A stretch of 64,000 nt of DNA from Aplysia californica. Lineage: Eukaryota. The position numbers and the translations under genes were made by a program. This document shows positions 6,570 to 53,536 of the stretch, piece after piece (positions within the stretch are counted from its first letter, which is position 1; each line of letters starts with the position of its first letter). The DNA lies in assembly GCF_000002075.1 (NCBI RefSeq), contig NW_004797591.1, positions 671,142 through 735,141 of the forward strand, in the 5' to 3' direction. The notes beneath the pieces were generated by a model, which worked only from the letters and a program-made list of their open reading frames with translations, had not been told where the DNA came from and made no database searches.

Positions 6570-6575
6570 TTTATT
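6570..6575 (-). terminator. Candidate AATAAA polyadenylation signal of the ADK-like gene
   Basis: tttatt on the + strand about 65 nt past the stop codon. Confidence 0.4.
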
Positions 6576-6639
6576 AGATATCATCACCAATACTCGAATC
6601 AATCCATTTTGTGAAACAAAATGACTGAATTCCATCTGT

Positions 6640-6923
6640 TTAAAACCAATCTTCAACATTGGCACTTTCGTCTCTACCCTCTGAAGTTCTGGGCTTCCAC
6701 GGGCTCGGGAACACAGTGAAGGGCATACTCAAAAGCTTCTTGTTTCCCTTGTTGCCAACGTTGAGCTCTCCGAGTTCCATCCGCCGTTTCCATTCTGTCA
6801 GCGTCTTATCTTCTCCGCTGGCAAAGTCCACACCATACATGGTGGACACCAAGCTAGCAGTAAAGAAGGCACAGTCAATGTTCACCTCAAGTGAGCACCC
6901 TTGGATCATCATTGCCATGAAGC
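6640..6923 (-). CDS. ADK-like last coding exon (GFMAMMIQG...VEDWF*)
   Basis: ctgacag acceptor; GFMAMMIQGCSLEVNIDCAFFTASLV ~ [26 protein letters not shown], followed by an extension of about 55 aa. Confidence 0.88.
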
Positions 6924-9900
6924 CTGTCAGCAGAGACACAGTAGACATTATTCAACCCTTTCATTGCTCAGGCATTTCCATCTACATTTGTACAGGCAAG
7001 ATAAAACAATACTTAAACAAGGCCATAGTATGTCTCCCCTTATTTAGAATAAACTACTTGAAAGTTTCAAACCTTCTACAATGTCCTCTACAAACCAGTA
7101 GTAATAGGGCAAAGAGCCAGTTTGGGAGAACACAAGTGAGTATTTGTCCACACAGCAGTGATGAGGTTAAGGAGGTGTGAAGAGGTCACATCAACATTTT
7201 CATTAAAGTCAGTGGATGAGCTTTCCACTTTCTTTCCAAAATGGTGAGGGAAAATAAAAAAGGGACCATTTCACCAGAAAATCATTTTGTCAGAGTTCAT
7301 TTAAAGCCAAAATTCACTGTAAATTTTCAAGCAGTAATTGTAGTTTGAAAATGCATTCAGATAATGTCAACTTTCAATACTTGAACTTGGAGTTTTAATA
7401 AGTCCTGTACAATAAGGAATTTAAATATAAATTAGATGGCTTTTATAGTTGGGGGAATCTTTCTAGTTCACAACCAATGCATGGTCAAATCTGCAAACGA
7501 AATCACTGAAAAGGAAGAGCAAAAAATTAAGTCTTTTACAAGTTTCCACCACGAGTCTGGGTGACAGTTAGGTGTAAGCACTGGGTGAGCATCTATAGAC
7601 TTATCCGCTATGATGAAACTTGGATACAGCAAACTCAAACTCAATGAAAACTCAAGACTCAACGCAGGTAGGTTCTGCTCTACAAAGCTTGGAGGAAGCG
7701 AGTTGAAAGACAGTTTGAGAGAAAAGGATATCAGGGCATGTTGAGTGTGTAATGTAAAATGGAGAGCAGACAGTTTCCATTCCTGAAAATAAACCAATAG
7801 AGCACCCAAATTAAATATTTTGTCTTGTCTCACCAGCAACAAATGCATAGTTGACTCCATAAAAATCGATGACTTTGTCAGCCTTCAAATATTTTGACCG
7901 GAACTTTGAAGTTTTACCGCTGTGCAGGTCTGAAAGAAATAAAGTCCACAGTAGATTCAACAAAAATTTAGAAGAAAAAATAAGTCTAACCCCCAATTCA
8001 TTTTTCCAGAAAAGTAAAAAAAAATTATTTTAAAAATCTCATAATACAGTTAGTGATTCAGAACAGTGAGTTTCCTATAACATTAGTAAAGAGGGAACAT
8101 TATGCAATGCTTACTCTCTCCCTCTCTGTGCCTGTCTATCCATCAATCTGTATATATGTACCTACCACTTATCTATGGTATCTAAATGTGACACTTGAGA
8201 CAACTAACCAGCAAGAGCATTTATAAAGCAACAGTTTAGACTTAATATTAGCAGAGAAGTCCCAGAAGCAAAGAATGATGTAGAGATGAAGTTTATCCAG
8301 AAAACAGACTGGCCATTACATGTACTAAGACAGGGTGCTTAACCCAGCAAAGAGAGTAGAGAAGAAGAGAGACAAAAAGAATCAGTAGATACACCAAGGA
8401 AAATACTACTATCGAGAATCCACATATGAATATTCATGAGTGTTCTTCTGTAAACTTTAAGTGGGTGTATTTATTCCACCCAGACCCACTGAAGCAAAAA
8501 CCTTTACCCGCATTCTGTCAACAAAAAAAGCAAGACTGACTCACCTGTGTGAACATAGGCAACGTACAGACCATCACTGACAATAACAGTGCATGTTTTC
8601 TTGGAGTGGGATTTGATCCACTTACTGATGGCACGAGCTTGGTGTTCAAAAGAAGAGCATACCTGCAGTGAACGTTTTAGGTAGGGAAAATTCATTTTAC
8701 ATAAAATCATGAAACAGATTCTTCAGCGTACTAAACATAATAGTAATGCAACAGTAATTAAAATTTTGATAGAGTAGGTCATTCCCCTGTCAAGATGGAA
8801 TAAGAACCAAAACGGTGAGGTATCGAGTAAAATTCAACATATTGCAGGTAACAAATCAACAGTGCACAAAGAAAAGCATTGATGAGCAACAGTAGTACAC
8901 GATGTAGCGTGCCAGCAATCATATTTTCAGCCACGGTCAGCCTTCAAAAGGACTTTTGGCCAAACTGAAGCCTTAATGTTACTCTAGCTTGCTTTATATC
9001 TCCTCTCCCCTCTGGTTCGAAAAAGGATACCGTTTAAACGCCCTTGGCTTGTACATGCAGATGCCATAGTGTTTTTTTTATTTGAGAACCTTCACGACAC
9101 TTGTTGAGGGCAACAATCTCTGACCCAACATGTGGATGCACACTGCATTGTCACAACTAGAACTACTACGTATCCTCTTAGTCTGCAAGGCAATACTTCG
9201 TACACTGAAAAATTAACATATTATTAAAGTTATAATATTTTATAAACTCATATTGCAGACAAAAGGTCCCAATATAAGGCTCTTTATTGGTGTTTTGAAA
9301 AAACAATCATGTTGATAAAATGGAAATAGATTCTTATAAATTTTCACCATCTTCTCCGGACAACTTCTCTTGGCTGTGGAGACAAATGGGAGTTGAATCA
9401 TCACACTTTGCACAAAACCTTAGGAGGGGATTGGGATTTTTTTTAAATGCTACATTTTTTGCATTCTGCTGATGCACTGAGATCTACTGCACAGGAAAAA
9501 ACCCAGAGATAATTTCTTTTAAATATATAACGTTTAAAAACCCGAGCAAAAGTAAGTCATGAAGAGTATACTTACGAGACATGAAATCTGAAATAAGAGA
9601 AAAAGAAAACAACATTTAATACTGAGCAAGATTATAAGTCGTTTTAACCCTGTCAGACTTCCCTCTATACCTGGCCTCCAGAGCAAAAGTTAGCAGAAAT
9701 GCATATGGTTCACAAAAGTGGTTAGCACAGGAAAACGAGTCATCAGAAACACATGAAACTTGGTAAAAATACATATAAAAGGCCTACCTTTGAGCTAATG
9801 CCAGTACTCAGATAGGTTTTCAAGAACTTCTTGTGTGGTAAACAGTTGAGACCTAGTCCTCTTTCCTATCGAAGTGTTTGGTCCATCAGCACGTCTCTTC

Positions 9901-12900
9901 ATGACAAAAAAAAATCCAAAACCTAGAAGAGAAACTACAGTCCAACCTCATGGAGTCTACCATTTGCAATGATCAATTCTCGCACTAAAAGCGGAGTTTA
10001 GAGATGATTGGCCAGCTATTTTAAAAATATGACATCGTTTTATGACGCGACCTCCCAATTACCGGTGTGCCAAAAAATTCGGCATAGTTGAAGTTTTGAG
10101 TATTCCCAGGAATAAGGTCTGACAGGGTTAATATGTCTGTACACAGTCTGTTGCAAGATAGCATGAGATCAAATGGTAAAAATGTCTCCATAATAGTGAC
10201 AGCCAAAAGTTCACACAGCTTGAAATGAATTTTGAAAATACAGACGTTGTTTTCTGTTCAAATGTTCAGAGAAATTCTTCAAAGATAAAGATCGGACTCA
10301 CATTGTTGGAAGGAAAGAAAGATGTCTTAACTAACAAGCTAAATATAGAGTTATTGTAAAAAGAAATATTCCCAGCATCAGTGTATATTATGAATACTTT
10401 ATATATATCTTGAACAGTAACTTGCTGTAAACTTCAGACTCTTTCTTACATGATTAAAAAAAATGATATCCTATGAAAACGACTGATAAGTTTGATCCTG
10501 CTAAGCCAATTTAAATCTAAATAACTTTTGAAGTTAAAAGTATTTTACTCCTCCTACTTAACATCAACTAAAAAAAACTTACTGGTATGTTGTACAACTT
10601 TATCAAGCCTTGAGCACACTGAAGAAGAAAGAGGAAAGAAAATTTTGTTTAAATGATTAAAGAATTTAAGAAAGAATTGAATTGTTTCAGGAAAGGAAAG
10701 CTACAATTATACACAGAGGAGCAACAAACTGACATCCCCAATCATGTATGCACAACTATGACCTTCTGGACAGAGAGACATACTAACTTGAACGAGGGCA
10801 TANNNNNNNNNNNNNNNNNNNNNNNNNNNNNNNNNNNNNNNNNNNNNNNNNNNNNNNNNNNNNNNNNNNNNNNNNNNNNNNNNNNNNNNNNNNNNNNNNN
10901 NNNNNNNNNNNNNNNNNNNNNNNNNNNNNNNNNNNNNNNNNNCATGTTGCACTGTATTAAAATTAGAAAATCAAAGTGCCTTAGAAACTACAAACTAACG
11001 GCACCATTCACACGTAGTAAATAGAGGGTTGTTTTCTCTTCTTAGAAAGAAATAATCAGAAACATCAGATATGTTGTAGAAGTTACAGAAATTCCAAGGA
11101 AAATGACAGCATCTGCAACTTTACATAAAATGAGCTGACTAGAATAGAGCAAACAACTTGAATCGACAGTTTGGAACAACAACTACAACGTCAATTTTTC
11201 TCTTCTGACCTCTAAGTCCATGAAGAGCACGTCGGTGTAGGCAAGAGTCTCCATGATAGTCTGCTTGTGTTGGCACACCAAGCCATAGTGAGAAAGACTG
11301 ACACAGAACTGCTTGAAACGGGCGCAGCAGTAGTAGGCCAGTCGCAGCAGCGCCTTTGGCATGAAGCAGATTGTCAAATCCTGCAAGTAGATACATGATG
11401 AGATGACTCATATCTAGGTTAACTAGAAACACATAGGTGCATCAGTAGTCACTGAGAGCTGGGGAAAAGCAAGACAGGGAGACAGAAACAGCACGGGGAT
11501 AACAAAAAAGAAGTGCGACCTCACAGTAACACCCTCCCATCACCTTGCAAAGACACTGCAGCTCTGTGTTTCAAGTCTGAGCATAAGACTGACAACCTTT
11601 CAACTCAAAGTATAAAAAGCATGCAGCCATTAAGCATCTCATTACACAGTCAAAACCTCTTGTTGCACCCATGTCAGATTGGTTAAAATGATAAATCAAA
11701 GTCCACCAATGTTCTTTTGTCATTGTATGACTTTTGACTCCAATAAACCACATCACGTACAAAGCTAACACTTCACACACAGAATTTCAAGCACTGTCTC
11801 TTTTGGAAGATATAATATAGGCTGAGTATTGTAAAAAATATTTCATAAAAATCGAAAAATGGCATATGAACTAGAGAATCATAACAAAGCAACAGCAATG
11901 TTTGCCTCCTTTTAAATGAATGAGCACTCCGATTTGTGTCCTTGAGCATACCTTATTAGTACAGCTGCAAGGTTTTGTGTTCTTTTTTCTTAAATGTTTA
12001 ATCTTTTCACATCCCAGTAACAATGGTAAAAAACAAAAATAAACTTCAAACAGGAAGTTCTGAAATTTTCTTCTCATTTTTTGAAAATTTCTTCTCAAAA
12101 CAAATGAACAAGACCAAGCGCTCCGCTCTAAAAAAATGTTTTTTATTTACCTTATCGGACATTAACCTTTGGCAAATTATACGCAAATGAGAGTTTCTTA
12201 TTTACTCTTGTTTTAAGCACATAAATACAGATACAGTCGAACCTGCTTTAACAGAAACCTGTGCAAAACGGAAACCTCCCTTGACAGAATTTCCTCGCTC
12301 CCCCCTTGATATATTCCTCTTTAATTACCTGTATAAAACGGAAACCTGTTCAACATGGAAACGGAAAGAAAAATCCGCTCCCTTCTGAGGGTGTTACCTG
12401 TTTGAGACGGAAAATGCTTTGCCTGCTCAGTCCTAATTTGAAACAAAACTGGCAAGTTTGGTTCCGCCGGCTCTAAACTTAATGCCATGCTGCCAGGCAA
12501 GGAAGGGGAGTAGGGGAGCATTTTAGGAGTAGATGTTACCCCGTCATGTGAACCCTGAGCGATGCAGATGGTCAGTGTGGTGTGGGTGTGAAATCTCACG
12601 AGTGCCAGTGAAAGTGCTTGAGTAACGAGCCACCACGGAAGCTTTCCTGGGTAGCCAGAAGCCAGAGGTGTGTGTGAAATTACATGTACTTTGACCAATG
12701 CCTGCCGCCCCGATCGTAGGGCCAATCGAGAAAAGAGTTCCTTGAATGGTTGTTACATGGCAGTGAGGGGTGGCATTGGTTGACTGCTTGTTACACCGAT
12801 GGGTGGGGCAAAGAGTGAAAGTAAAGAAGATGTTCAAACGTTTCTGTTTTTAACAGGTCAAACAGTGGTAGCACTGGTGGTAGTTGGATAAGTAAGACTG

Positions 12901-25900: not shown

Positions 25901-28423
25901 AATTTAGTTCTTTTCCTTTTTAGTAGAAGGCTGTTTCCACAGTTCCAGGTTGTTGGGAAACTGGGCCCCAACAGTAAGACTAAAATATCTGATAAAAAAT
26001 CTTCCTTATGTGAACATCAAACTTATTTCTCTTACATACAAGGCTAACTAGGTAACCTGTACACCATTACTTGCTCTGGTAGCTGTAACAGGAATACAAA
26101 TAAAACATAGGCCTAAGCATGACCATTTAATTTTGCTTCTATGAAAAAATTAATAAGACGCCAGACAGACGTAACATTGTTAAGAAGTAAATTATTTCAT
26201 ATTGATTAATGCTTTTATCACACACAAGTACAAACCCACATGTATCTCGAATCATTCCCAAGCACATAGTAGGTGCCAAGGAGAAGGTTGTGCCTGAAAA
26301 AAAGAAAAATTTCTAAACATGCACAGACATTCTTTGTCCTAGATATTTCTTATGACATTATGACATTATCTCATTTTACTCGTCTAAACCAAACAAACCA
26401 AACCTCATGTCTCACATTAAGAACTGGATTTGACAATGGTTTACCTGTTTCCCCTCTCATGCTGTTCACTATTGTCATCACAGAAAGACTGCCAATGTCA
26501 TTTATGTCCATAAATAGTGGGGGGGGGGGGGGGGGAGGATTGGTATTTTTTGTTAACTCACATATATATCAGATGAAAGGTGAAATTCTAGAAATAATAC
26601 ATTTTGTACTTTTGTCTTTTATTGTTGGTAATCACCAAGTAAGATCTAGTTTAAAAGCAGAGCAAAAAAGACTCCTACGATCAGTTATTGAGGCAGACAA
26701 TCTCACTATTATTGAATAGTTTGACTAAACAAAATGCATAAAAAGTGTGAAATCAAGAAGGGAGAGAACGAAAAAAAAGACTATAGATCAAAATAACAAA
26801 AGTATCAGTAAAAAGCAAAACCTAAAACCTAGTGATACTTTTTGAACAAAAATGTGCTCTATTGCGCCTCATCATAAAACTTTCCAGTAACAAATCACTT
26901 ACTTATCAAGGAATTCCTTGGTAACCGTTACATTGTAAGTGAGAAATGGATGTCCGATAACAATGCAGTTCATGAAGCTTGACCTGAGGAGCAGGACAAA
27001 TGACATGGTTTCGGGTGCAGGGAAGCAAGGCCGCCCATTGTCCAGGAGATAGGTGGTCATTTTAGACAGGTGGATGTCTTAGATGGTATTTAGAAAAAAA
27101 ATGCAAGTGGGGAAGAGGGAAGTGGTTATATGTGCAGTTAAGTGTCTTGGACGGGTGGCCCTTAGAGCATGTTCGACTGCATATATATATTCATAATAAA
27201 CATACTATGGCCGATCAGTTAGCTCAGTTGTTATTATACTGGACTATGAAGTGGATGGCCTTGGTTCGAATGCCAACAGGGTGTTCTTGCACTAGAGTTG
27301 TTTCTCAAAGCCCTCAACCAAATTGGCACTGCTTTAAAGGAGATGGACATTACATTTGAAAGTCCAACGTCTTAAATAATCTAAATGTGTTGAAAGGGTG
27401 TTAAACTTAGTTAAATCCTTACATTCAATTATTTAATTGTACATACCATATTAAAGATAAATTGTAAATGCATGAGCAACACTTCTCGCCTTACCCATGG
27501 CGAACAACATGGAAGTCATCTAAAGAGCTTTCACTGTGCTCTGAATCTGCCTGAAACAAAAGAAAGCAAAAATAAATAATAACTGGAACCACAGGCATTT
27601 GATGCGTTGGTAAAAAAAAATAAGTTCCTGATTTCATACATAACCAAAATAAATAAATAACACTTTATTTATCCATAAGGGGAAATTTGGGCTACAATGG
27701 CAGGCACACATGAACGCCAGCCCACATCCACACAAACACACACACATACATTTAAGAACACAAACATACACCATACAATGAATACCAAATACATATAATT
27801 ACACTAATGCAGACAATTTTACAAACATGCCACTGCTGGTTGCCATTAAGTAGCATTCCGTTTTTTTTTAGCAAGGGTTATCATGGCTTGCCCAAGGACA
27901 CACTCAGTGACCACCCATCTAAGCACGATGTCACAGACAATGATTATTTGTGTGTCTGAACTTACTAAACTCTCCACCACTTGAGTAGAACCATGGTTTT
28001 GAAAATATAATTATCACTAAAAATGGTGCCTTTTTCTCTTTTTTAGTTTGCAAAGCCAATTTAGTTTTTTAGTACCATCGAAACAACAAAGTTCTCGAGA
28101 TGCAAGGACTAAGCAAATAATTTGAGCACTTATAATGAAACTGAAAGCGTAAACTGCCAGTCAAAACTACAATCATAAAATTTTTTTAAAGCTTTTAGCA
28201 AAACTTTCAATTTCATTCTATTTAGGGTGGTTCTACAAATCGCTGCACAGGGTAAAACAAACCCTAGTGACACAACCATCAGTCACTAAATTCTGACCGT
28301 GGCCTTCAAATGATATTCTTTGCAATCAGTAAACACTGACTTTACCTGAGCGAAATTGACAGGGCAGTCAACACTTGAATCTGATGGTCCTGAACTTTTT
28401 TTCAGGAAGCTTAATTTCTTCAT
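6640..28423 (-). CDS. Adenosine kinase-like protein (PfkB/ribokinase family), highly divergent, predicted catalytically inactive; 12 coding exons, about 441 aa
   Basis: Hand-assembled exons with GT-AG boundaries and compatible phases: 28346-28423, 27495-27550, 26903-26983, 26240-26293, 21537-21627, 14974-15143, 13139-13229, 11210-11380, 10583-10618, 8545-8662, 7834-7929, 6640-6923 (1326 nt, no internal stop). The translation is colinear with ADK: CIVIGHPFLTYNVTVTKEFLDK ~ [37 protein letters not shown] ~ HAGGSTQNSIKVAQW; YTDVLFMDLE ~ YVDILFGNET; VIDFYGVNYAFVAGF ~ IIDTNGAGDAFVGGF. Exon sizes of 54, 171 and 36 nt match vertebrate ADK as I recall it. Confidence 0.88.
7834..7929 (-). CDS. ADK-like coding exon 11 (DLHSGK...VIDFYGVNYAFVA)
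   Basis: tttctttcag acceptor, gtgaga donor, phase 1->1; contains the degenerate PfkB signature 2. Confidence 0.88.
8545..8662 (-). CDS. ADK-like coding exon 10 (VCSSFEHQARAISKW...VIVSDG...VHT)
   Basis: ctgcag acceptor, gtgagt donor, phase 0->1; ungapped match to ETKDIKEIAKK...IVIFTQG. Confidence 0.88.
10583..10618 (-). CDS. ADK-like coding exon 9 (CAQGLIKLYNIP), 36-nt mini-exon
   Basis: Long polypyrimidine tract + cag, gtaagt donor, phase 0->0; fills exactly the EAATFAREQGFE segment of ADK. Confidence 0.85.
11210..11380 (-). CDS. ADK-like coding exon 8 (DLTICFMPK...YTDVLFMDLE), 171 nt
   Basis: ttgcag acceptor, GAG|gtcaga donor, phase 0->0; frame of ORF 11183..11386. Confidence 0.88.
12234..13098 (+). 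mobile_element. Tc1/pogo-type MITE
   Basis: TA|CAGTCGAACCT ... AGGTTCGACTG|TA. Confidence 0.8.
13139..13229 (-). CDS. ADK-like coding exon 7 (DWWSVPIKLSYMD...ERANLFFAC)
   Basis: ttttcttcag acceptor, weaker gtacga donor, phase 2->0; ILERANLFFA ~ LVEKARVCYI. Confidence 0.8.
14974..15143 (-). CDS. ADK-like coding exon 6 (WLTGQPKSVVFIG...HFNKG)
   Basis: tttcag acceptor, gtatgt donor; aligns with WMIQQPHKAATFFGCIG of ADK; lies within ORF 14955..15140. Confidence 0.88.
16888..17429 (+). mobile_element. tRNA-derived SINE family A, full length
   Basis: tRNA-like head (TGGTCTAGAGG...GGTCCGAGTCC), colinear with 1488-1970. Confidence 0.85.
17921..20236 (+). mobile_element. 5'-truncated RTE-group LINE (degenerate APE end + RT)
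   Basis: Fragmentary RT motifs (APGPDDI, QFGF, FIDQEKAFDRV, VRQGSILSP, FADD, FKYLGS, GRGRPRKRW); TSD attcgtagtt at 17911-17920 and 20237-20246; internal tandem duplications near 18586-18645 and 19840-19960. Confidence 0.9.
21537..21627 (-). CDS. ADK-like coding exon 5 ([30 protein letters not shown])
   Basis: ttttgcag acceptor, CAG|gtaaga donor; retains the PfkB GG motif. Confidence 0.88.
21890..23134 (+). mobile_element. hAT-like non-autonomous element with a degraded 5' end, relative of 31919-33280
   Basis: Shares actgggcaagacc...gttgacaagagatttattgc, the internal ataattagcatttga block and the 3' end aaaccac.agc.gcc.ctg with 31919-33280. Confidence 0.7.
23583..24183. mobile_element. CpG-rich hAT-like MITE
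   Basis: 8-bp TSD gcatacag (23575-23582, 24184-24191), imperfect TIR TAGAGACGGGC / GCCCGCCCAA, many subterminal CGAGA/TCTCG motifs. Confidence 0.7.
24302..25791. mobile_element. Tc1/pogo-type non-autonomous element
   Basis: TA|CAGTAGAACATGACTATAG ... CTATAGCCATGTTCTACTG|TA. Confidence 0.82.
26240..26293 (-). CDS. ADK-like coding exon 4 (HNLLLGTYYVLGNDSRY), 54 nt
   Basis: Strong tttttcag acceptor, gtgggt donor, phase 2->2; same size as the matching ADK exon. Confidence 0.82.
26903..26983 (-). CDS. ADK-like coding exon 3 (SSFMNCIVIGHPFLTYNVTVTKEFLDK)
   Basis: ctcctcag acceptor, gtaagt donor, phase 2->2; aligns with the ADK GNPLLD...KDFLDK exon. Confidence 0.88.
27208..27412 (+). mobile_element. 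tRNA-derived SINE family B, degenerate
   Basis: TAGCTCAGTTG A box, GGTTCGAATGC B box; 3' half matches 60815-60890. Confidence 0.7.
27495..27550 (-). CDS. ADK-like coding exon 2 (ADSEHSESSLDDFHVVRHG)
   Basis: Polypyrimidine tract + cag acceptor, gtaagg donor, phase 0->2 links exon 1 to exon 3. Confidence 0.7.
28346..28423 (-). CDS. ADK-like coding exon 1 (MKKLSFLKKSSGPSDSSVDCPVNFAQ)
   Basis: ATG at 28423 with an in-frame TAA upstream. The exon acceptor ttttaag lies at 28465 and the donor is CAG|gtaaag, phase 0. No ADK homology, so this exon is less certain. Confidence 0.6.
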
Positions 28424-29742
28424 ATTTAAGTCCGCGATGTCAGGTTAACAGAGTTTCATCACACCTTAAAATGAAATTTTAGATGAAAAAATTTCACATT
28501 AAAAGACAGTCNNNNNNNNNNNNNNNNNNNNNNNNNNNNNNNNNNNNNNNNNNNNNNNNNNNNNNNNNNNNNNNNNNNNNNNNNNNNNNNNNNNNNNNNN
28601 NNNNNNNNNNNNNNNNNNNNNNNNNNNNNNNNNNNNNNNNNNNNNNNNNNNNNNNNNNNNNNNNNNNNNNNNNNNNNNNNNNNNNNNNNNNNNNNNNNNN
28701 NNNNNNNNNNNNNNNNNNNNNNNNNNNNNNNNNNNNNNNNNNNNNNNNNNNNNNNNNNNNNNNTGGCATGCAGACAGATAGACAGACAAGTGTACAGAAA
28801 GACAGACAGTACGCAATTCAGTGTCAGTTTGAGTTGAAGAGAAACACATTGACTATAACAATGTTCATTTTGAGCACTAAAAGATCACAGGGAAAAATGA
28901 AAGAAAAATAAACAAAAGTGAAAAAGTAGAACATAGATCTTCCCAAAGCTGTATCAGTCAGAGGACAGGACCTAAGATGTTTTTTAAAGAGAAAGATGCA
29001 GCACAAAAAAAGCAAAAGAAGGCAAGTTTTGCAAAGTGTATTGACAAAATTAACCCATTTCTGCTGAAACATTAAGTTAATTTCATTAAGACAAAAAAAT
29101 TAAAATAGTTGGGTTTTTTTCATTTTTCTTAGTCTATGAATCAGAAGCACTTTCAGTTTAGTGGACCAAAAAACACAAAATTATATTAAAGTTCAGAGGT
29201 CTCTTTTTCTAAAGATTTGGCCATTGGATGACACAGACATTTGGTGGACTTCAAAGGACGCCTCCCAGCTCCTACTGGTTAGCTTCCCGGTTACCACTTT
29301 TGTTTATTCATACATGCACTTGCAATATGATCTATGGGCATTCTTAAAGCTTAAAATAAGATGTATGATGTTTTCTTGCCTTTTTTAATTATGGGAGAGG
29401 AGAAAAGCCCTTCAGCAATTGAACAGCATTGAGCAAATTCATGAGCCTACATAATATGTCCTAAGTGTACACGCAGAGCATATATATCTATATGCCATCT
29501 TCTAGCCTAAGCCACTAGCACCCCTTCCACCCAAGCACCCCTCTTGTATCTCCCTTTTCTTCATTAGGGCAAAGCCAAGAAATTTTAAAGCATAAACATT
29601 ATTACACATCATTACAATGCTTCTGCCTGTACTTATCAAAGGGCTGGTGAGCTTGAAAGTGGACAGGGCAGTGTGAAATTTATACAAGTAGAGGCAGGGT
29701 ACCACCAAAGTGTCTCCATTTATATTATGCATCACCATGCAA

Positions 29743-37071: not shown

Positions 37072-40000
37072 TGATGTTCGTCCTTCGCTGGAGAAGATGA
37101 CCTTGACTTCACATCATTTGAGGGGTGGGGTGTGTGCGGAGATGGCTGATCAGGCCGATCTTCGCTCGGAAATGTCTGTTGCAGTGGGTGCAGGGTATGT
37201 TTGTGGGGCTGAACTAGGCTGGAAGGTAGGGCTCTCTCTGTCTTTTCTCAGCTGCCGTCTCCATTCTTTCTTTCTGACGCGACTTTCTTCGAATTTGGCC
37301 ACTCCCGATCTTATTAAGGAGCGCCAAACTGCGTGATCGCGAGCAGCTTCTTCCCAGGTGGTATGGGGAATGTCACAAATCTTCAGGCCACTTCCTCATC
37401 GATATTGACCGAGTGAGAGAGGGTGCTGCCAAGGTAAATAAACTTATCTGCCACTGCCAGTTTCTCTTCGTAGATGGTACTATGGGGCTCTATGTAAGGA
37501 ACCAATAGGGCTGGCTGGTACAGTACTTCGGTCTTCTTTGTGGAGATAATAAGGCCGACATTTTTGCAGGCTTTAGAAAAACGGTCCAGGCTTCCTTGCA
37601 TGTCTGACTGAGTACTGGCATTAGGCGCGCAGTCGTCTGCAAAGAGTAAATCGCGGGCTATGTCTGCCTGGACTTGAGTCTCCGAAGGTTGAAGAGTTTC
37701 CATCTGTGCGGTAACGAAAACCGACACCGATATCTCCGTCGTGGTAGGCGTCGGTCAGCATAGCTGAGAACATCATGCTGAACAGAGTGGGGGCCAGCAC
37801 GCATCCCTGCTTCACTCCATTGGTGACGGGGAAGGGTTGGGAGTACACCCCATCGTCCTGCACTTTTGCTGTCATGCCATCGTGGGATTGTTGGACCATC
37901 ACAATGAACATTGCGGGGCACCCGAACTTTGCCATGATGTTCTGCAGCCCTTCGCGACAGACAATATCAAATGATTTCGTCAGATCCACAAACGTGGAGT
38001 AGAGTCCAGGGTTCTGCTCTTGGCATTTCTCTTGTAGTTGACGAGCAGCGAAGATCATGTCCAAAGTACTGCGTCCCATGCGGAATCCACACTGACTCTC
38101 AGGGAGCAGGTCGTGTTCCAGATGTGCAACGAGGCGATTGAGCAGGATGCGAGCCAGGATCTTCCCAAACGATGGAGAGCAGGGCGATGCCTCGGTGGTT
38201 GTTGCAGGTGTTCCTGTTTACTTTGCGCTTGTAAAGGTGGATAATCGAAGCGTCTTTGAGTTCCTGTAGCAGCTTTTCTTGTAACCACCTGGCGGTAAAC
38301 AGGCTTGTCAGTTTCTCTATTAGTGTTGGGCCTCCAGAAGCGTAGATTTCAGCAGGAATGGAGTCTGCACCTGGTGCCTTGCCACTGGAGAGGCGTTTGA
38401 TGGAGAGCATTATTTCTTTTTCTGTTGGTGGGTCTGCCAGAGTGTTGTCGAATGGCACTTGTGGTAGTCTTTCAATGACTTATTCACTGTTGATGGATAC
38501 TGTTTAAGTGTTGTGCCCAACGCTTGAGGATTTTCTCCTGGTCTGTTATCAGCGTGCCCCCGTCTGCGCTGAGGAGAGGGGATTGCCCTGACGAGGTGGG
38601 TCCGTAGACGGCCTTGAGAACGCTGAAGAAGTTCTTCATGTCCTTCCTGTCTGAATAGGCCTGGATGGCGTCGGCCTTCTCACTGAGCCATTTGTCTTGT
38701 AGTTGTCGTAGTTCGAACTGGACTCTCCTCCTGGCCGTATTGAAGTTATCTTTCTTTGAGGTGGAGGAGGGGTCATTGAGGAGTGCTCTGTGGAGTCGGT
38801 GTTTCTCCTCTTATATTGTCTGGATGTGACAGGTGTTGTCGTCGAACCAATCTTTATGCTTGCGGGTAGTGGGGCCAATGATATTTAAGGCAACACCATA
38901 GACGGCGTCACAGACTAGACGTGCCCACTCTGTCTCATCATCGGCTTGCGGGTCTATGTCGCTTTGTTGCAGTTTTTTCTCCAGCTCTTCTACCAGCGCA
39001 TGTTTGACAAGATCATTCTTGAGCTTGGAGACGTTCAGTCGCTTGGCCACTTTAATGCCTTGGGGCCTCCTGGGTGGTGTGATTCTGAGGCTCATCTTAG
39101 AGATGAGGAGACGATGGTCCGTCCAACATTCTGCACCGCACATGGTCTTTGTGACTCTCACATCCTGTCTGTCTCTTTGCCTGACGATGACGTAGTCGAG
39201 TAGATGCCAGTGCCTGGAGCGTGGGTGCATCCATGACGTCTTGTTACGATTGGGCAGGCGGAAGACCGTGTTGGTGATGAGAAGATCGTGGGCAGCGCAC
39301 GTTTCCAACAGGAGGAGTCCGTTGCTGTTGCAATTGCCAGCACCGTGTCTCCCTCACACTTCCTCCCACGACTTGAAGTCTCTTCTGACTCGAGCATTGA
39401 GGTCACCAAGGATGATGAGTTTGTCTGCCCAGGGTACGGCTGTGAAGGTCTTCTTTAGGTCCTCGTAGAATTTTCCTTTTATGTCGACTGGGTTGGTCAT
39501 AGTGGGTGCGTTAGCGCTGATCAGCGTGGCAAATCTCTTTTTGGGGAGCGGGAAGTTGTCAGTCATCAGGCCATCGTTGATTCCCTTAGGGGGAGCTGCC
39601 TGCTTGTTGACCAGGTTGGACTTGATAGCAAAACCAACCCCTGCCTCACGACGCTCGTCGAGTCCACGACCGATCCAGACGAACGTGTAGCCGGCAGACT
39701 GCTCTGTGAGTTGTCCTTCCTAAGCGAGGCGAGTCTCACTGAGGGCGGCAATCTGTACTTTATATCGACCCAGTTCGCTGGCAATGAAGGCCGTCCGTCT
39801 TTCGGGACGGTTACTCCCTGATCGATCAAGGAGGGTGCACACATTCCATGCCCCAAGGGTGATGGTCATCTTTGATTTTTTTTAGTTCTTCTTACCGCTG
39901 GTGTGGGACCCTGCCAGTCGCGGCATGCTGGCCAAGGAAGGGTGAGACAGGCAATTTCTAGGACTCCTTTTCTAGTCCCGTCCCCAGGCAGTGGGGGGAA

Positions 40001-49985: not shown

Positions 49986-51691
49986 GTCAAAACGATACTG
50001 TTATACATGCATGTGTATGCCTGACTGAGAGACTGAAGAAATAGTGTGTGGGAATGAGAAAGAGAGAGACACACAGAGAGAGGGAGAGACAGAGAGAGAG
50101 AGAGAGAAAGACAAAGACGGAGAGAATGGAAATGTTGTTCTATTTATAGAGAGCGAATGTTTTTATAGAATGTTTCTAACTATTCAAGTTTCATTTTTAT
50201 TATGACCGTTCATGAGTTTTTATTGCGTTCTATATTTTTAGTGAACGCCTGGCCAGGCTCGCTGTGTGACTATTTTTTTAATAGAAATTTTTATAAATAT
50301 AATATACATATATATTTATAATACTATGTTTTATGTACACACATGTTCATTAATTTTTAAGCCAGTTTGACAATCGCAGTTTTCTGCATTGTGTTAGGAA
50401 TCTCTTAATAAAAGTTAATACCTGTATGAAAATGCATTTTATGCCACATATTAATTTACTAGAACAGTTAAGAGTTATTTTGTTTTTGCATACTGTAATG
50501 TATTTTGTTGTGTGACAGCTTGCCATAATCAGGAAAAATGGAAGCTCTAAGAAAATCTATAATGTAATAGCTATGTTATAATATAATATTGTTAATGAAA
50601 AATTAGGCAGTTGTAAACCTGTGTTTTAAGATTTTTTACTGTTTCGCAAAAAGAAAAAGACCCTTTCCTTCCTTTCTGCTCATAGTGTTTTATAGCAACA
50701 ACAGGAAGGGGAGGAAATCTAAACACGAGAACAGCCTTGAGATCAATAGTCCAATAGCCATAAAGTGTTAAAGCTGTGCTACACTTTGCATTAGTTCCAT
50801 AATAATAAGTGCAGTGTGAAATAGGCCAGGTGTTTAAAACAATTATCTGAGAGGAAATTGTAAAGTATTTTTTTTTGTCTGATAGATTAACAAATATCAA
50901 GAGTTTGTGTATTGTTTAGCAAACCCAGGAAATAATTCTAAATATTTTATGCTGTAGCACAATCACAGACAAAAGCATATAAATGTAAACTACATGCTGC
51001 GTGTAGCGTCAACTTTTCAACTATTTNNNNNNNNNNNNNNNNNNNNNNNNNNNNNNNNNNNNNNNNNNNNNNNNNNNNNNNNNNNNNNNNNNNNNNNNNN
51101 NNNNNNNNNNNNNNNNNNNNNNNNNNNNNNNNNNNNNNNNNNNNNNNNNNNNNNNNNNNNNNNNNNNNNNNNNNNNNNNNNNNNNNNNNNNNNNNNNNNN
51201 NNNNNNNNNNNNNNNNNNNNNNNNNNNNNNNNNNNNNNNNNNNNNNNNNNNNNNNNNNNNNNNNNNNNNNNNNNNNNNNNNNNNNNNNNNNNNNNNAAAC
51301 ATATGCTTTGGAAGATTTGAAATGACTTATTTTAGAGAATATAAATGTTTCTCCATGTGTCTCTTTATCTGCTATAGTTGTATAGCAGGGATGTTTTTCA
51401 ACAATAGAGAAAGCTAGGACTAAGATTTTAAACAAGCTGCTCTCTTGTTTTTCTTTCTGTGTTTTCAAGTGATCAATTAAAAAAAAAATAGTTGTTTTAA
51501 TGGGTTTACGTAGCTGTTGGATATATAGATCTATATCTATTTTTTGCTATGCTGTAACACGATGAGAGATCTGTACCAGCAATAGAGAGACTTGAAAGCC
51601 AGCAGAATCTCCTTCAACTGATCAGTATTTTTTTTCCTTCTCATTTCAGATATCTTTGGCATATATTTGTTATCCTGGCCTGCTCATCACC

Positions 51692-53536
51692 ATGGATAAA
51701 AGTAAAACAGTAATCCTGGAGATAAGTTCTGAGGACAGTCGCAGCTTGGAGACGGCCTTCAAAGGCATTGTGGCTGCTGTGTTCTATGGCGTATGCTCTG
51801 TTTCCTCTGCGTTTGTCTCCAAAGCTCTGATGGACACTCTCGACTTTGATTATCCAGTGACTATCATGGTGGCTCAGATGATTTTTACTATCGTGGTACT
51901 GGAGTTGTTGAGCATATTCCGGATCATTGAACTGCAGGCATTCACCCTAAAAAGGGGTTTGTCATTTGCGGCACCCTCGTTTTTTTATGGGACCAATGCT
52001 GTTTTAGCACTGACGGCTCTTTCACACATGAACATTGCGATGTACGGTGTGCTTAAGAGATGTGTTCCACTTTCTACCATGCTTTTGTCTGTGATTGTGC
52101 TTAAAAAAGGCTTTCCGTCTCGAAAAACTACGTCAGCTGTCGTGTTGTTGACAACTGGATGCGTCATAGCAGGTAAGATATAAGAAAAAAAACTGTTGGT
52201 TGGAGCCAAGGTGTTAAAGGTAAGTGATGTTTCCTTTCCATATGTGTATGTTGAAGGCTGGTTGAGAGTAATTTTAAACATGTATTGTTTGAGCTAGTTT
52301 TGTACAAATTGAGATATTGACTTTTAATGGGTGTTGTGCCTACAGTGTTCTATTTCAAGGTACATATATTAAGATTCCTGAATTTTTCCTGTTGAAAATA
52401 TTCCTTCTGTGGGGGTGTGAGGACTTTTTGTCTGGCAGAATTTTAACAAATTGGTTCTTCTAAGTAAACTTCATTGTTGTCCATGCCTCACACCTATTCA
52501 TGTTAATAGAAAACATAGAGTAACAATAATTATTTTTTTGTATAAACCAGAAGCACAGGCCCTGAACACTTATTACTTGCTGTTTATGCATATATTATGT
52601 ATTTAAAAGGGTTGTTAAAATTTGAATGGACCAGCATGCATGAAACGTATCATCGTGTAAGTTGCTGAAATTGTATAATATTGTGAAGGGACTAGAGCCA
52701 CCAGGGAGTGGGCACTATAGAAGTGATTTTTTAATATCATCGTCATCATCGTCATCATCATTAATACATAATTATTATTATTATTTTTATTATTATTATT
52801 ATTATTAATACTATTATTATTATGAAAATATTTAAAAGAATTTTTTTAAAATTTCTTGTACTGGTAGTGATCTTTTCTCTTCTTCCATCATGAAGGTTAT
52901 GGTGACCTTGGCTTCAACTTGACTGCCTATATCTGTGGCATTGGCAGCAACTTCACGCAGGCCCTGTACCTCCTGCTGGTGCAGAAGTTCTCGGAGCGTC
53001 ATGTATCTGTGGTGGAGACGCTTCAGCTCAACAGCTTCAACACTTTGCCTTTGCTAACACTTGTAGCGCTGGTTAACGGGGAACTGTTCGCGGTGCATAG
53101 TTATCCCAAATTGACAGAACTTCAGTTTCTGTTAATGTTCTTCATGGCCATCAGCGTGGGCATGCTGCTGAATTACTCTCTGTTCCTCTGTACCAGTTTG
53201 ACCAGCGCCTTGACCACTAGTGTCGTCGGTGGCCTGAAGGCACTCGTTCAGACTCTTCTTGGCTTGGTGACATTTGGAGGCGTATCTCACAATATGGCTA
53301 CTTTCGTTGGGATCAGCATGAACCTGTCTGGCGGCATCGGCTACATCTGGGCTCGGTACACGGAGAATAAATCTGGGTTGCAGAGCCTCAAAAAGGTCAT
53401 GAGCTTCTCACAAATTGGGAACTCTGGTCTGTCGAATGGTCAAGTTCAAAATGTAGAAAGGAATGGGTATCAAGGGGACGAGATAATGTCCCATCGCTCC
53501 ATAGCCACTCCCTCATCAAACTCTGAAGAGTCATGA
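51692..53536 (+). CDS. SLC35D3: Nucleotide-sugar transporter, SLC35D3-like (TPT/DMT superfamily), about 373 aa, exons 51692-52172 and 52896-53536
   Basis: Good-context accATGg start, GCAG|gtaaga donor, tgaag|GTTAT acceptor, phase 1. About 10 hydrophobic segments; motifs MYGVLKRCVPL, GCVIAG|YGDL, LNYSLFLCT..TSALTTSVVG. The single coding intron falls at AG|xGDL, as I recall for vertebrate SLC35D3. An acceptor at 51649 implies an upstream non-coding exon. Confidence 0.9.
52735..52823. repeat. (CAT)n/(TTA)n microsatellite in the SLC35D3-like intron
   Basis: Visible directly. Confidence 0.9.

Follow-up and report, generated by a model that had tools for sequence, protein, structure and literature searches.

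LOC101851748 of Aplysia californica, an adenosine-kinase-like gene with an open reading frame and a largely replaced active site, as a candidate pseudoenzyme

Can a kinase gene be maintained when most of the residues of its active site have been replaced, and if so, what might its product still do? The question is raised by LOC101851748, an adenosine kinase (ADK)-like gene of the sea hare Aplysia californica, which occupies the minus strand at 28423-6640 of a 64-kb stretch of DNA (hereafter the window; G000:C321:671142-735141, in an assembly of 927 Mb and 4332 contigs). The gene has multiple exons and its frame is uninterrupted. From comparison with intact ADKs we think it rather probable that LOC101851748 is a lineage-restricted, catalytically dead ADK paralog that is maintained as a coding gene, and whose function would reside in the fold and the added tails and not in catalysis.

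The gene was retrieved with its 170-nucleotide (nt) exon (window:14958-15158:-), which was searched against a library of 1.84 billion proteins in a full HMMER scan. There was a single strong match, P0001 (E value 2e-29), whose library name is 'uncharacterized protein LOC101851748 isoform X2'. The 90% cluster of P0001 also contains isoform X1 (P0124), under three XP accessions, and has the UniRef name 'adenosine kinase'. NCBI thus has an annotation for LOC101851748, that of an uncharacterized protein. The preliminary description of this DNA had noted that the gene escapes a list of open reading frames (ORFs), but the gene is not hidden, since the NCBI annotation and the UniRef name exist.

Isoform X1 has 451 residues in 13 coding exons (1356 coding nt with one terminal stop), and X2 has 403 residues in 11 exons by exact-match spliced mapping. 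Each maps letter for letter to the window and no frame correction is needed. The X1 model consists of the 11 X2 exons plus two upstream exons read from the sequence. The earlier model of 12 exons and about 441 residues was right about the multi-exon structure, the GT-AG borders and the open frame, but it missed at least a 12-nt microexon and so fell short of the exact model. A spliced alignment with a low intron penalty produced spurious mini-exons from over-splitting and was superseded by exact mapping of the database protein. The coding exons are as follows.

28346-28423, minus strand: coding exon 1 (78 nt), with the ATG at 28423; found in X1 only; donor gtaaag; placed by the exact P0124 map
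27495-27550, minus strand: coding exon 2 (56 nt, ending in phase 2), part of the X1 N-terminal extension; acceptor ...tttgtttcag, donor gtaagg
26903-26983, minus strand: coding exon 3 (81 nt), with GHPFLT (26955-26938), a degenerate GNPLLD; the X2 start codon is at 26973
26240-26293, minus strand: coding exon 4 (54 nt); donor gtgggt; exact protein map
21537-21627, minus strand: coding exon 5 (91 nt), with PGGEALV (GGEALV at 21572-21555), in which the Gly-Gly hinge is unchanged and Val stands in place of the ribose-binding Asn
14974-15143, minus strand: coding exon 6 (170 nt), with length and phase as in both multi-exon paralogs
13139-13247, minus strand: coding exon 7 (109 nt), with the last base of the lid Arg codon followed by SEIFFSDWW
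11210-11380, minus strand: coding exon 8 (171 nt), ending ...DVLFMDLE, the first three residues of a degenerate NxxE standing at its end
10583-10618, minus strand: coding exon 9 (36 nt), starting with the Cys that replaces the NxxE Glu; the paralogs have a 36-nt exon at the same place
9576-9587, minus strand: coding exon 10, the 12-nt microexon (ISCL, phase 0/0), with good splice signals; exact map
8545-8662, minus strand: coding exon 11 (118 nt), with IVSDG (SDG at 8578-8570), the counterpart of the ADK TxG
7834-7929, minus strand: coding exon 12 (96 nt), with DFYGVNYAFVAG, which contains a degenerate DTNGAGD heptad (DFYGVNY at 7867-7847); the catalytic Asp is Tyr
6640-6923, minus strand: coding exon 13 (284 nt including the stop), with the last ADK helices and a C-terminal tail of ~60 residues

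An in-frame stop lies 8 codons upstream of the ATG at 28423 in exon 1. All 12 introns are GT-AG (24 of 24 splice dinucleotides canonical), with pyrimidine-rich acceptors. The lid Arg codon (Arg129, X2 numbering) is split by an intron: exon 6 ends with NKG and two bases of the codon, which exon 7 completes. The microexon residues ISCL sit in a five-residue insertion relative to solved ADKs and are missing from both multi-exon paralog models; the frame would survive omission of these 12 nt.

The whole protein is recognizable as a member of the PfkB family. Scores against the PfkB profile (Pfam PF00294) were 47.9 bits for X2 and 47.5 bits for X1, over profile positions 27-296 of 302 and above the gathering cut-off of 25.8 bits. 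None of the single exons was significant in Pfam or NCBIfam scans, and a single-exon search of the PDB was blank; the homology to ADK is visible only collinearly or in the whole protein. Eighteen significant PDB sequence matches were obtained, all of them distinct solved ADKs aligned over the full domain (E values 1e-15 to 4e-8), and the 19th match was a sugar kinase (E value 0.43). Identity to any ADK was 19-28%. On these matches, the LOC101851748 protein is a PfkB-family protein, of the ADK branch by descent.

An AlphaFold2 model, for which the input was an alignment with 58 ADKs, had the ADK fold, with a mean predicted local distance difference test (pLDDT) score of 82.5 and a predicted template-modelling score of 0.84. 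When the model was compared with known structures by Foldseek, the top 37 matches were all ADKs, followed by other sugar kinases, with target template-modelling (TM) scores of 0.79-0.92. Residues 365-403 of X2 had pLDDT below 50, and the last ~40 residues are disordered in the model. The two-domain ADK/ribokinase fold (a three-layer alpha/beta/alpha large domain plus a lid) is thus kept in the predicted structure. The preliminary description had claimed retention of the fold and had proposed both the profile search and the overlay of a predicted structure on ADK; the 73% of conserved hydrophobic columns that are kept, the confident ADK-like model and the intron positions and phases, which are those of ADKs, all speak for its claim.

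How much of the active site persists within this predicted fold? The motifs were compared in the alignment against the 58 ADKs, with residue numbers of X2. At the 89 columns that are at least 90% conserved in ADKs, LOC101851748 retains the conserved residue at 36. In mouse ADK, the catalytic base is Asp316, DTNGAG forms the anion hole, Arg148 is the lid residue and K+ is bound via Asp310 (PMC6086891); the roles of the heptad and of the Gly-Gly conformational switch have been described (PMC3101181). The ribose motif GNPLLD has become GHPFLT (N8H and D12T), and GGATQN has become GGEALV (A63E, T64A, Q65L and N66V). NxxE reads DLEC (N220D and E223C) and spans the exon 8/9 junction (...MDLE|CAQ...). 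In the TxG region, which reads SDG, T267 is replaced by Ser and G269 is kept. The heptad DTNGAGD reads DFYGVNY (T300F, N301Y, A303V, G304N and D305Y), in which only D299 and G302 are kept. Several of these replacements are bulky aromatic or hydrophobic residues. The motifs GHPFLT, GGEALV, SDG and DFYGVNY were found at the places given in the preliminary description, and DLEC is present too, across the exon junction.

Other parts of the site are unchanged. The Gly-Gly switch (G61-G62) and the AFVxGF helix are kept, and D299, the first heptad Asp, is the counterpart of the K+ ligand of mouse ADK (role according to PMC6086891). The lid residues R129 and S130 are also present, NRSL aligning with GRSE in both HMMER and MAFFT alignments to ADKs. 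This contradicts the earlier claim that the lid Arg had been lost in a motif GSDW, a string that occurs in no minus-strand frame. The broader claim of active-site loss therefore holds for the ribose-binding Asn and Asp, NxxE, the anion hole and the catalytic Asp, but not for the lid Arg, the Gly-Gly pair or the first heptad Asp. With the catalytic base, anion hole, NxxE motif and ribose ligands all lost together, we infer that phosphorylation of adenosine by the LOC101851748 protein is very unlikely.

We also asked whether LOC101851748 is a gene or the remains of one. Its coding frame contains no stop before the terminal one, compared with 21 and 26 stops in the other two frames, and the probability that 451 codons would be open at the stop density of the gene's own introns is ~1e-11. 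Neutral drift was simulated by substitutions only, from the coding sequence of an intact Aplysia ADK down to 25% protein identity. The simulated sequences had a mean of 12.7 stops and a minimum of 4, and none of the 400 runs was still open; adding indels would worsen the odds of an open frame. No disabling lesion (stop, frameshift or lost splice site) was found in the 13 exons and 12 introns.

The intron positions of LOC101851748 are the same as in the multi-exon ADKs of Aplysia. Successive exon lengths of 170, 109, 171, 36, 118 and 96 nt correspond to 170, 106-108, 171-174, 36, 115-118 and 87 nt in the paralogs, with matching phases, and therefore the frame was not built by a free choice of exons. 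Conserved hydrophobic columns are still hydrophobic in 66 of 90 cases (73%, against a background of 44%; p 1e-8, to which alignment bias contributes), in line with the earlier claim that the hydrophobic core is kept; conserved polar columns are kept in 11 of 33. Base composition at codon positions 1 and 3 is unlike that of the introns (p 2e-7 and 1e-8, respectively); position 3 is enriched in C and depleted in A, a bias also present in an intact ADK gene. Neutral decay at this divergence does not account for the open frame, the splice sites or the bias in codon positions, and it is therefore a sound conclusion that the reading frame has been under long-term selection, as the preliminary description had also held.

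One part of the gene was not fully read in the assembly:

10803-10942, no strand: assembly gap of 140 N within intron 8 (11209-10619), outside the coding sequence

Between the gap and the splice sites of intron 8 there are 267 nt on the donor side and 184 nt on the acceptor side, and the end of exon 8 and the start of exon 9 are both in phase 0. Both multi-exon paralogs have a 36-nt exon immediately after one of 171-174 nt, so that no coding exon is expected in the gap. Zero residues are missing at this junction in the alignment to solved ADKs. Since DLEC straddles the junction of exons 8 and 9, it is the splice, and not any unread letters, on which this motif depends. A further gap (28512-28763) sits ~90 nt upstream of the start codon, and the 5' untranslated region and promoter are for this reason incompletely read. 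The window contains nine assembly gaps in all, up to 58650.

Several PfkB loci are present in the Aplysia genome, and they include the separate canonical ADK that the preliminary description had proposed to look for: intact ADK genes lie on contigs C130 and C1274 and, as a tandem neighbor of LOC101851748, on C321. The C130 gene (L001, G000:C130:1029780-1030667, minus strand; P0004, 'adenosine kinase 2-like') is intronless and fully canonical. Its product shares 58-75% identity with other molluscan ADKs, and despite the missing introns this gene seems to be the conserved ADK of the Aplysia genome. The C1274 locus is a multi-exon ADK with all motifs present. The tandem neighbor (C321:653257-662741, minus strand; L014, L015) is on the same strand, ~15 kb downstream of LOC101851748 and outside the window. 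Its DTNGAGD, NxxE and lid Arg are unchanged, but its GNPLLD reads GSPLLD. The neighbor and C1274 sequences used in local trees and identities are our own spliced models; that of the neighbor has 345 residues, with two small 5' exons uncertain. Its end branch (2.1-2.5 changes per column) marks the neighbor as a fast-evolving copy too. Searched against the window by tblastn, its exon pieces gave one weak true match, to the PGG exon. An alignment of P0001 with exon fragments of the neighbor, intended as a profile query, was too poor and was dropped. No second copy of LOC101851748 was found in the Aplysia genome.

Maximum-likelihood trees placed LOC101851748 in a molluscan clade, here called clade B, with C1274 and the bivalve 'adenosine kinase 2' proteins (Shimodaira-Hasegawa-like approximate likelihood ratio test support 98-99). 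The placement holds with or without the other long branch, that of the neighbor, and the PGG signature of clade B is present in LOC101851748. Pairwise scores were highest with P0104 (115 bits, 26% identity), followed by C1274 (99.8), the neighbor (73.6) and the C130 gene (60.5). In one tree LOC101851748 was paired as sister with the neighbor; because its end branch sits at the ceiling of the tree program, this pairing may be long-branch attraction.

Public annotation lists four protein accessions and two isoforms for LOC101851748. Together with the 12-nt microexon, which a predictor is unlikely to have placed without transcript support, these are an indirect hint of transcription. No paper on LOC101851748 was found when the literature was searched by gene, by protein accession and for Aplysia with adenosine kinase, and literature on inactive or 'adenosine kinase-like' proteins yielded no dead ADK paralog of an animal.

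Taken together, these observations can be joined as follows. LOC101851748 is probably an old, very fast-evolving duplicate of an intron-bearing molluscan clade B ADK, one that was retained as a protein-coding gene while its catalytic chemistry was dismantled. The ribose-hydroxyl ligands (Asn to His, Asp to Thr and Asn to Val), NxxE and the anion hole with its base have been replaced, and the hinge, the lid Arg-Ser and the first heptad Asp kept. The protein would then serve by virtue of its fold and not as a catalyst, for instance as a partner in binding or regulation. The 48-residue N-terminal tail and the ~60-residue C-terminal tail, which is partly disordered in the model, would be candidate interaction segments, and the enzymatic role would be covered by the intact ADKs elsewhere in the genome. 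The scaffold, regulator or structural role proposed in the preliminary description is speculative. A bolder version, which we regard as quite unlikely, would make the product a sea-hare-specific ADK-fold protein whose nucleoside and ATP clefts were re-lined with aromatics under positive selection and which now, without catalysis, senses a ligand or regulates by binding to proteins, for instance in purine or adenosine handling. If true, it would be the first dead ADK paralog described in an animal.

Several observations weigh against a maintained, catalytically dead paralog. The end branch of LOC101851748, at the ceiling of the tree program (10 changes per column; the median is 0.32), is as compatible with very relaxed constraint as with a new function. 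A very recent loss of function, before any lesion had appeared, could also explain the intact frame. The predicted structure depends on input from true ADKs, and the loss of activity is deduced from residues. No ortholog was found among 1.84 billion representatives with the 170-nt exon (full HMMER scan), and word-indexed searches with the whole of X2 and with X1 residues 250-395 returned only LOC101851748 itself; several other heterobranch proteomes were present in the database. The gene would thus be either confined to the sea-hare lineage or diverged past detection.

A first rival idea is that LOC101851748 is a dying or functionless duplicate, under very weak or no present constraint and perhaps transcribed at a low level, which is still open by chance and has no role of its own. 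The branch at the ceiling of 10 changes per column, the single copy in one species with no ortholog detected in the library searches, and the retention of just 11 of 33 conserved polar columns all speak for this idea. We nevertheless consider it unlikely, for the 1356 coding nt and the 24 splice dinucleotides are free of premature stops, frameshifts and splice-site damage, every one of the 400 neutral runs had at least 4 stops, and the hydrophobic pattern and the codon-position bias are preserved; any loss of function would have to be very recent. That the frame is an artefact of annotation or assembly, stitched together by a predictor or dependent on a gap, is hardly credible: although the gene contains one gap and is preceded by a second, ~90 nt before the ATG, and the model includes a 12-nt microexon, collinear similarity to ADKs located the exons without recourse to the annotation, and the intron positions and phases agree with two paralogs. 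Moreover, the gap within the gene falls in a phase 0/0 intron where the ADK alignment is complete, and the frame does not depend on the microexon.

The product might instead still be an enzyme, a neofunctionalised PfkB-fold protein that uses other residues, or that acts on a non-ribose substrate or by other chemistry. With the Gly-Gly hinge, the lid Arg-Ser, the first heptad Asp and the TxG Gly all kept, the domains may still close and the nucleotide site may survive in part, and the GSPLLD of the neighbor shows that variant sites have been explored in this lineage. However, there are simultaneous substitutions at the catalytic base, at three of the four small residues of the anion hole and at both positions of NxxE (to Tyr, Asn, Val, Tyr, Phe, Asp and Cys), and we know of no PfkB kinase that works without the GAGD anion hole and base. 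We think continued enzymatic function very unlikely, and a maintained, catalytically dead paralog remains the reading that we favor.

LOC101851748 was also compared with its closest known relatives. With animal ADK (EC 2.7.1.20; mouse 5kb5/5kb6, human 1bx4 and Anopheles 3loo) it shares full-length collinear homology (E values 1e-15 to 1e-12), the predicted two-domain fold (TM scores 0.79-0.92), the Gly-Gly hinge, the lid Arg-Ser and the AFVxGF helix. Unlike these enzymes, it has the ribose Asn/Asp/Asn, NxxE, the anion hole and the catalytic Asp replaced, and it has extra tails of 48 residues at the N terminus and ~60 residues at the C terminus plus a 4-residue microexon insert. The clade B ADKs (Aplysia C1274 and the Crassostrea 'adenosine kinase 2' proteins P0104 and P0115) are nearest by score and share the PGG signature, the intron-rich structure and the intron phases, but they keep every catalytic motif, and their end branches are 0.04-0.5 as against 10 changes per column. 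The tandem neighbor has the same contig, strand and exon plan and is likewise a long branch in clade B. In contrast to LOC101851748, it differs from the canonical motifs only at GSPLLD, and it is 39-40% identical to clade B ADKs and 23% identical to LOC101851748.

To our knowledge, pseudoenzymes are common but have rarely been documented among the PfkB-fold metabolic kinases, for which the plant FLN proteins are the main precedent. FRUCTOKINASE-LIKE 1 and 2 (FLN1 and FLN2) are PfkB-family proteins of the plastid-encoded RNA polymerase complex for which no kinase substrate was found and which have a non-metabolic, complex-bound role (PMC3409070). They thus set a precedent for a non-catalytic member of the PfkB fold. 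They differ from LOC101851748 in belonging to the fructokinase branch, in being targeted to plastids, in their plant-wide conservation and in the genetic evidence for their function. The weight of our finding is limited in that it rests on one species. Within that species, one genome offers a natural series, from the ancestral type (C1274) through the mildly divergent tandem neighbor to the fully dismantled copy, which allows one to ask which parts of the ADK fold persist once catalysis is lost; here these would be the hinge, the lid Arg and the first heptad Asp. Aplysia is, in addition, a model of neurobiology in which adenosine signalling matters.

The remaining features concern the introns, the flanks of the gene and the rest of the window. 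Past the stop codon lies one candidate signal:

6572-6577, minus strand: AATAAA hexamer ~65 nt past the stop codon, a possible polyadenylation signal

The introns had been described as full of transposable elements. One interspersed repeat was found in intron 5 (~16840-17360), translated pieces of which match copies in introns of the C1274 and C348 PfkB loci (L019, L021, L017 and L018), but the reverse-transcriptase-like ORFs at 18-20 kb in the same intron gave no match in a Pfam scan. Farther upstream, a GC-rich block at 36-42 kb contains a reverse-transcriptase fragment at 37621-38076 on the minus strand (Pfam RVT_1, E value 1.1e-10), probably a remnant of a long interspersed nuclear element; the ORF at 38811-39305 near it had no Pfam match. 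Long open exons at 51656-52180 on the plus strand, and probably also at 52919-53533 (plus strand), would encode a multi-pass membrane protein, the product of a separate gene upstream of the ADK-like gene, with sub-threshold matches to the EamA, TPT and nucleotide-sugar transporter families. Finally, a 173-residue ORF at 6659-7180 (plus strand), antisense to the last coding exon and without support as a gene, is most likely a by-product of the absence of stops on the coding strand.

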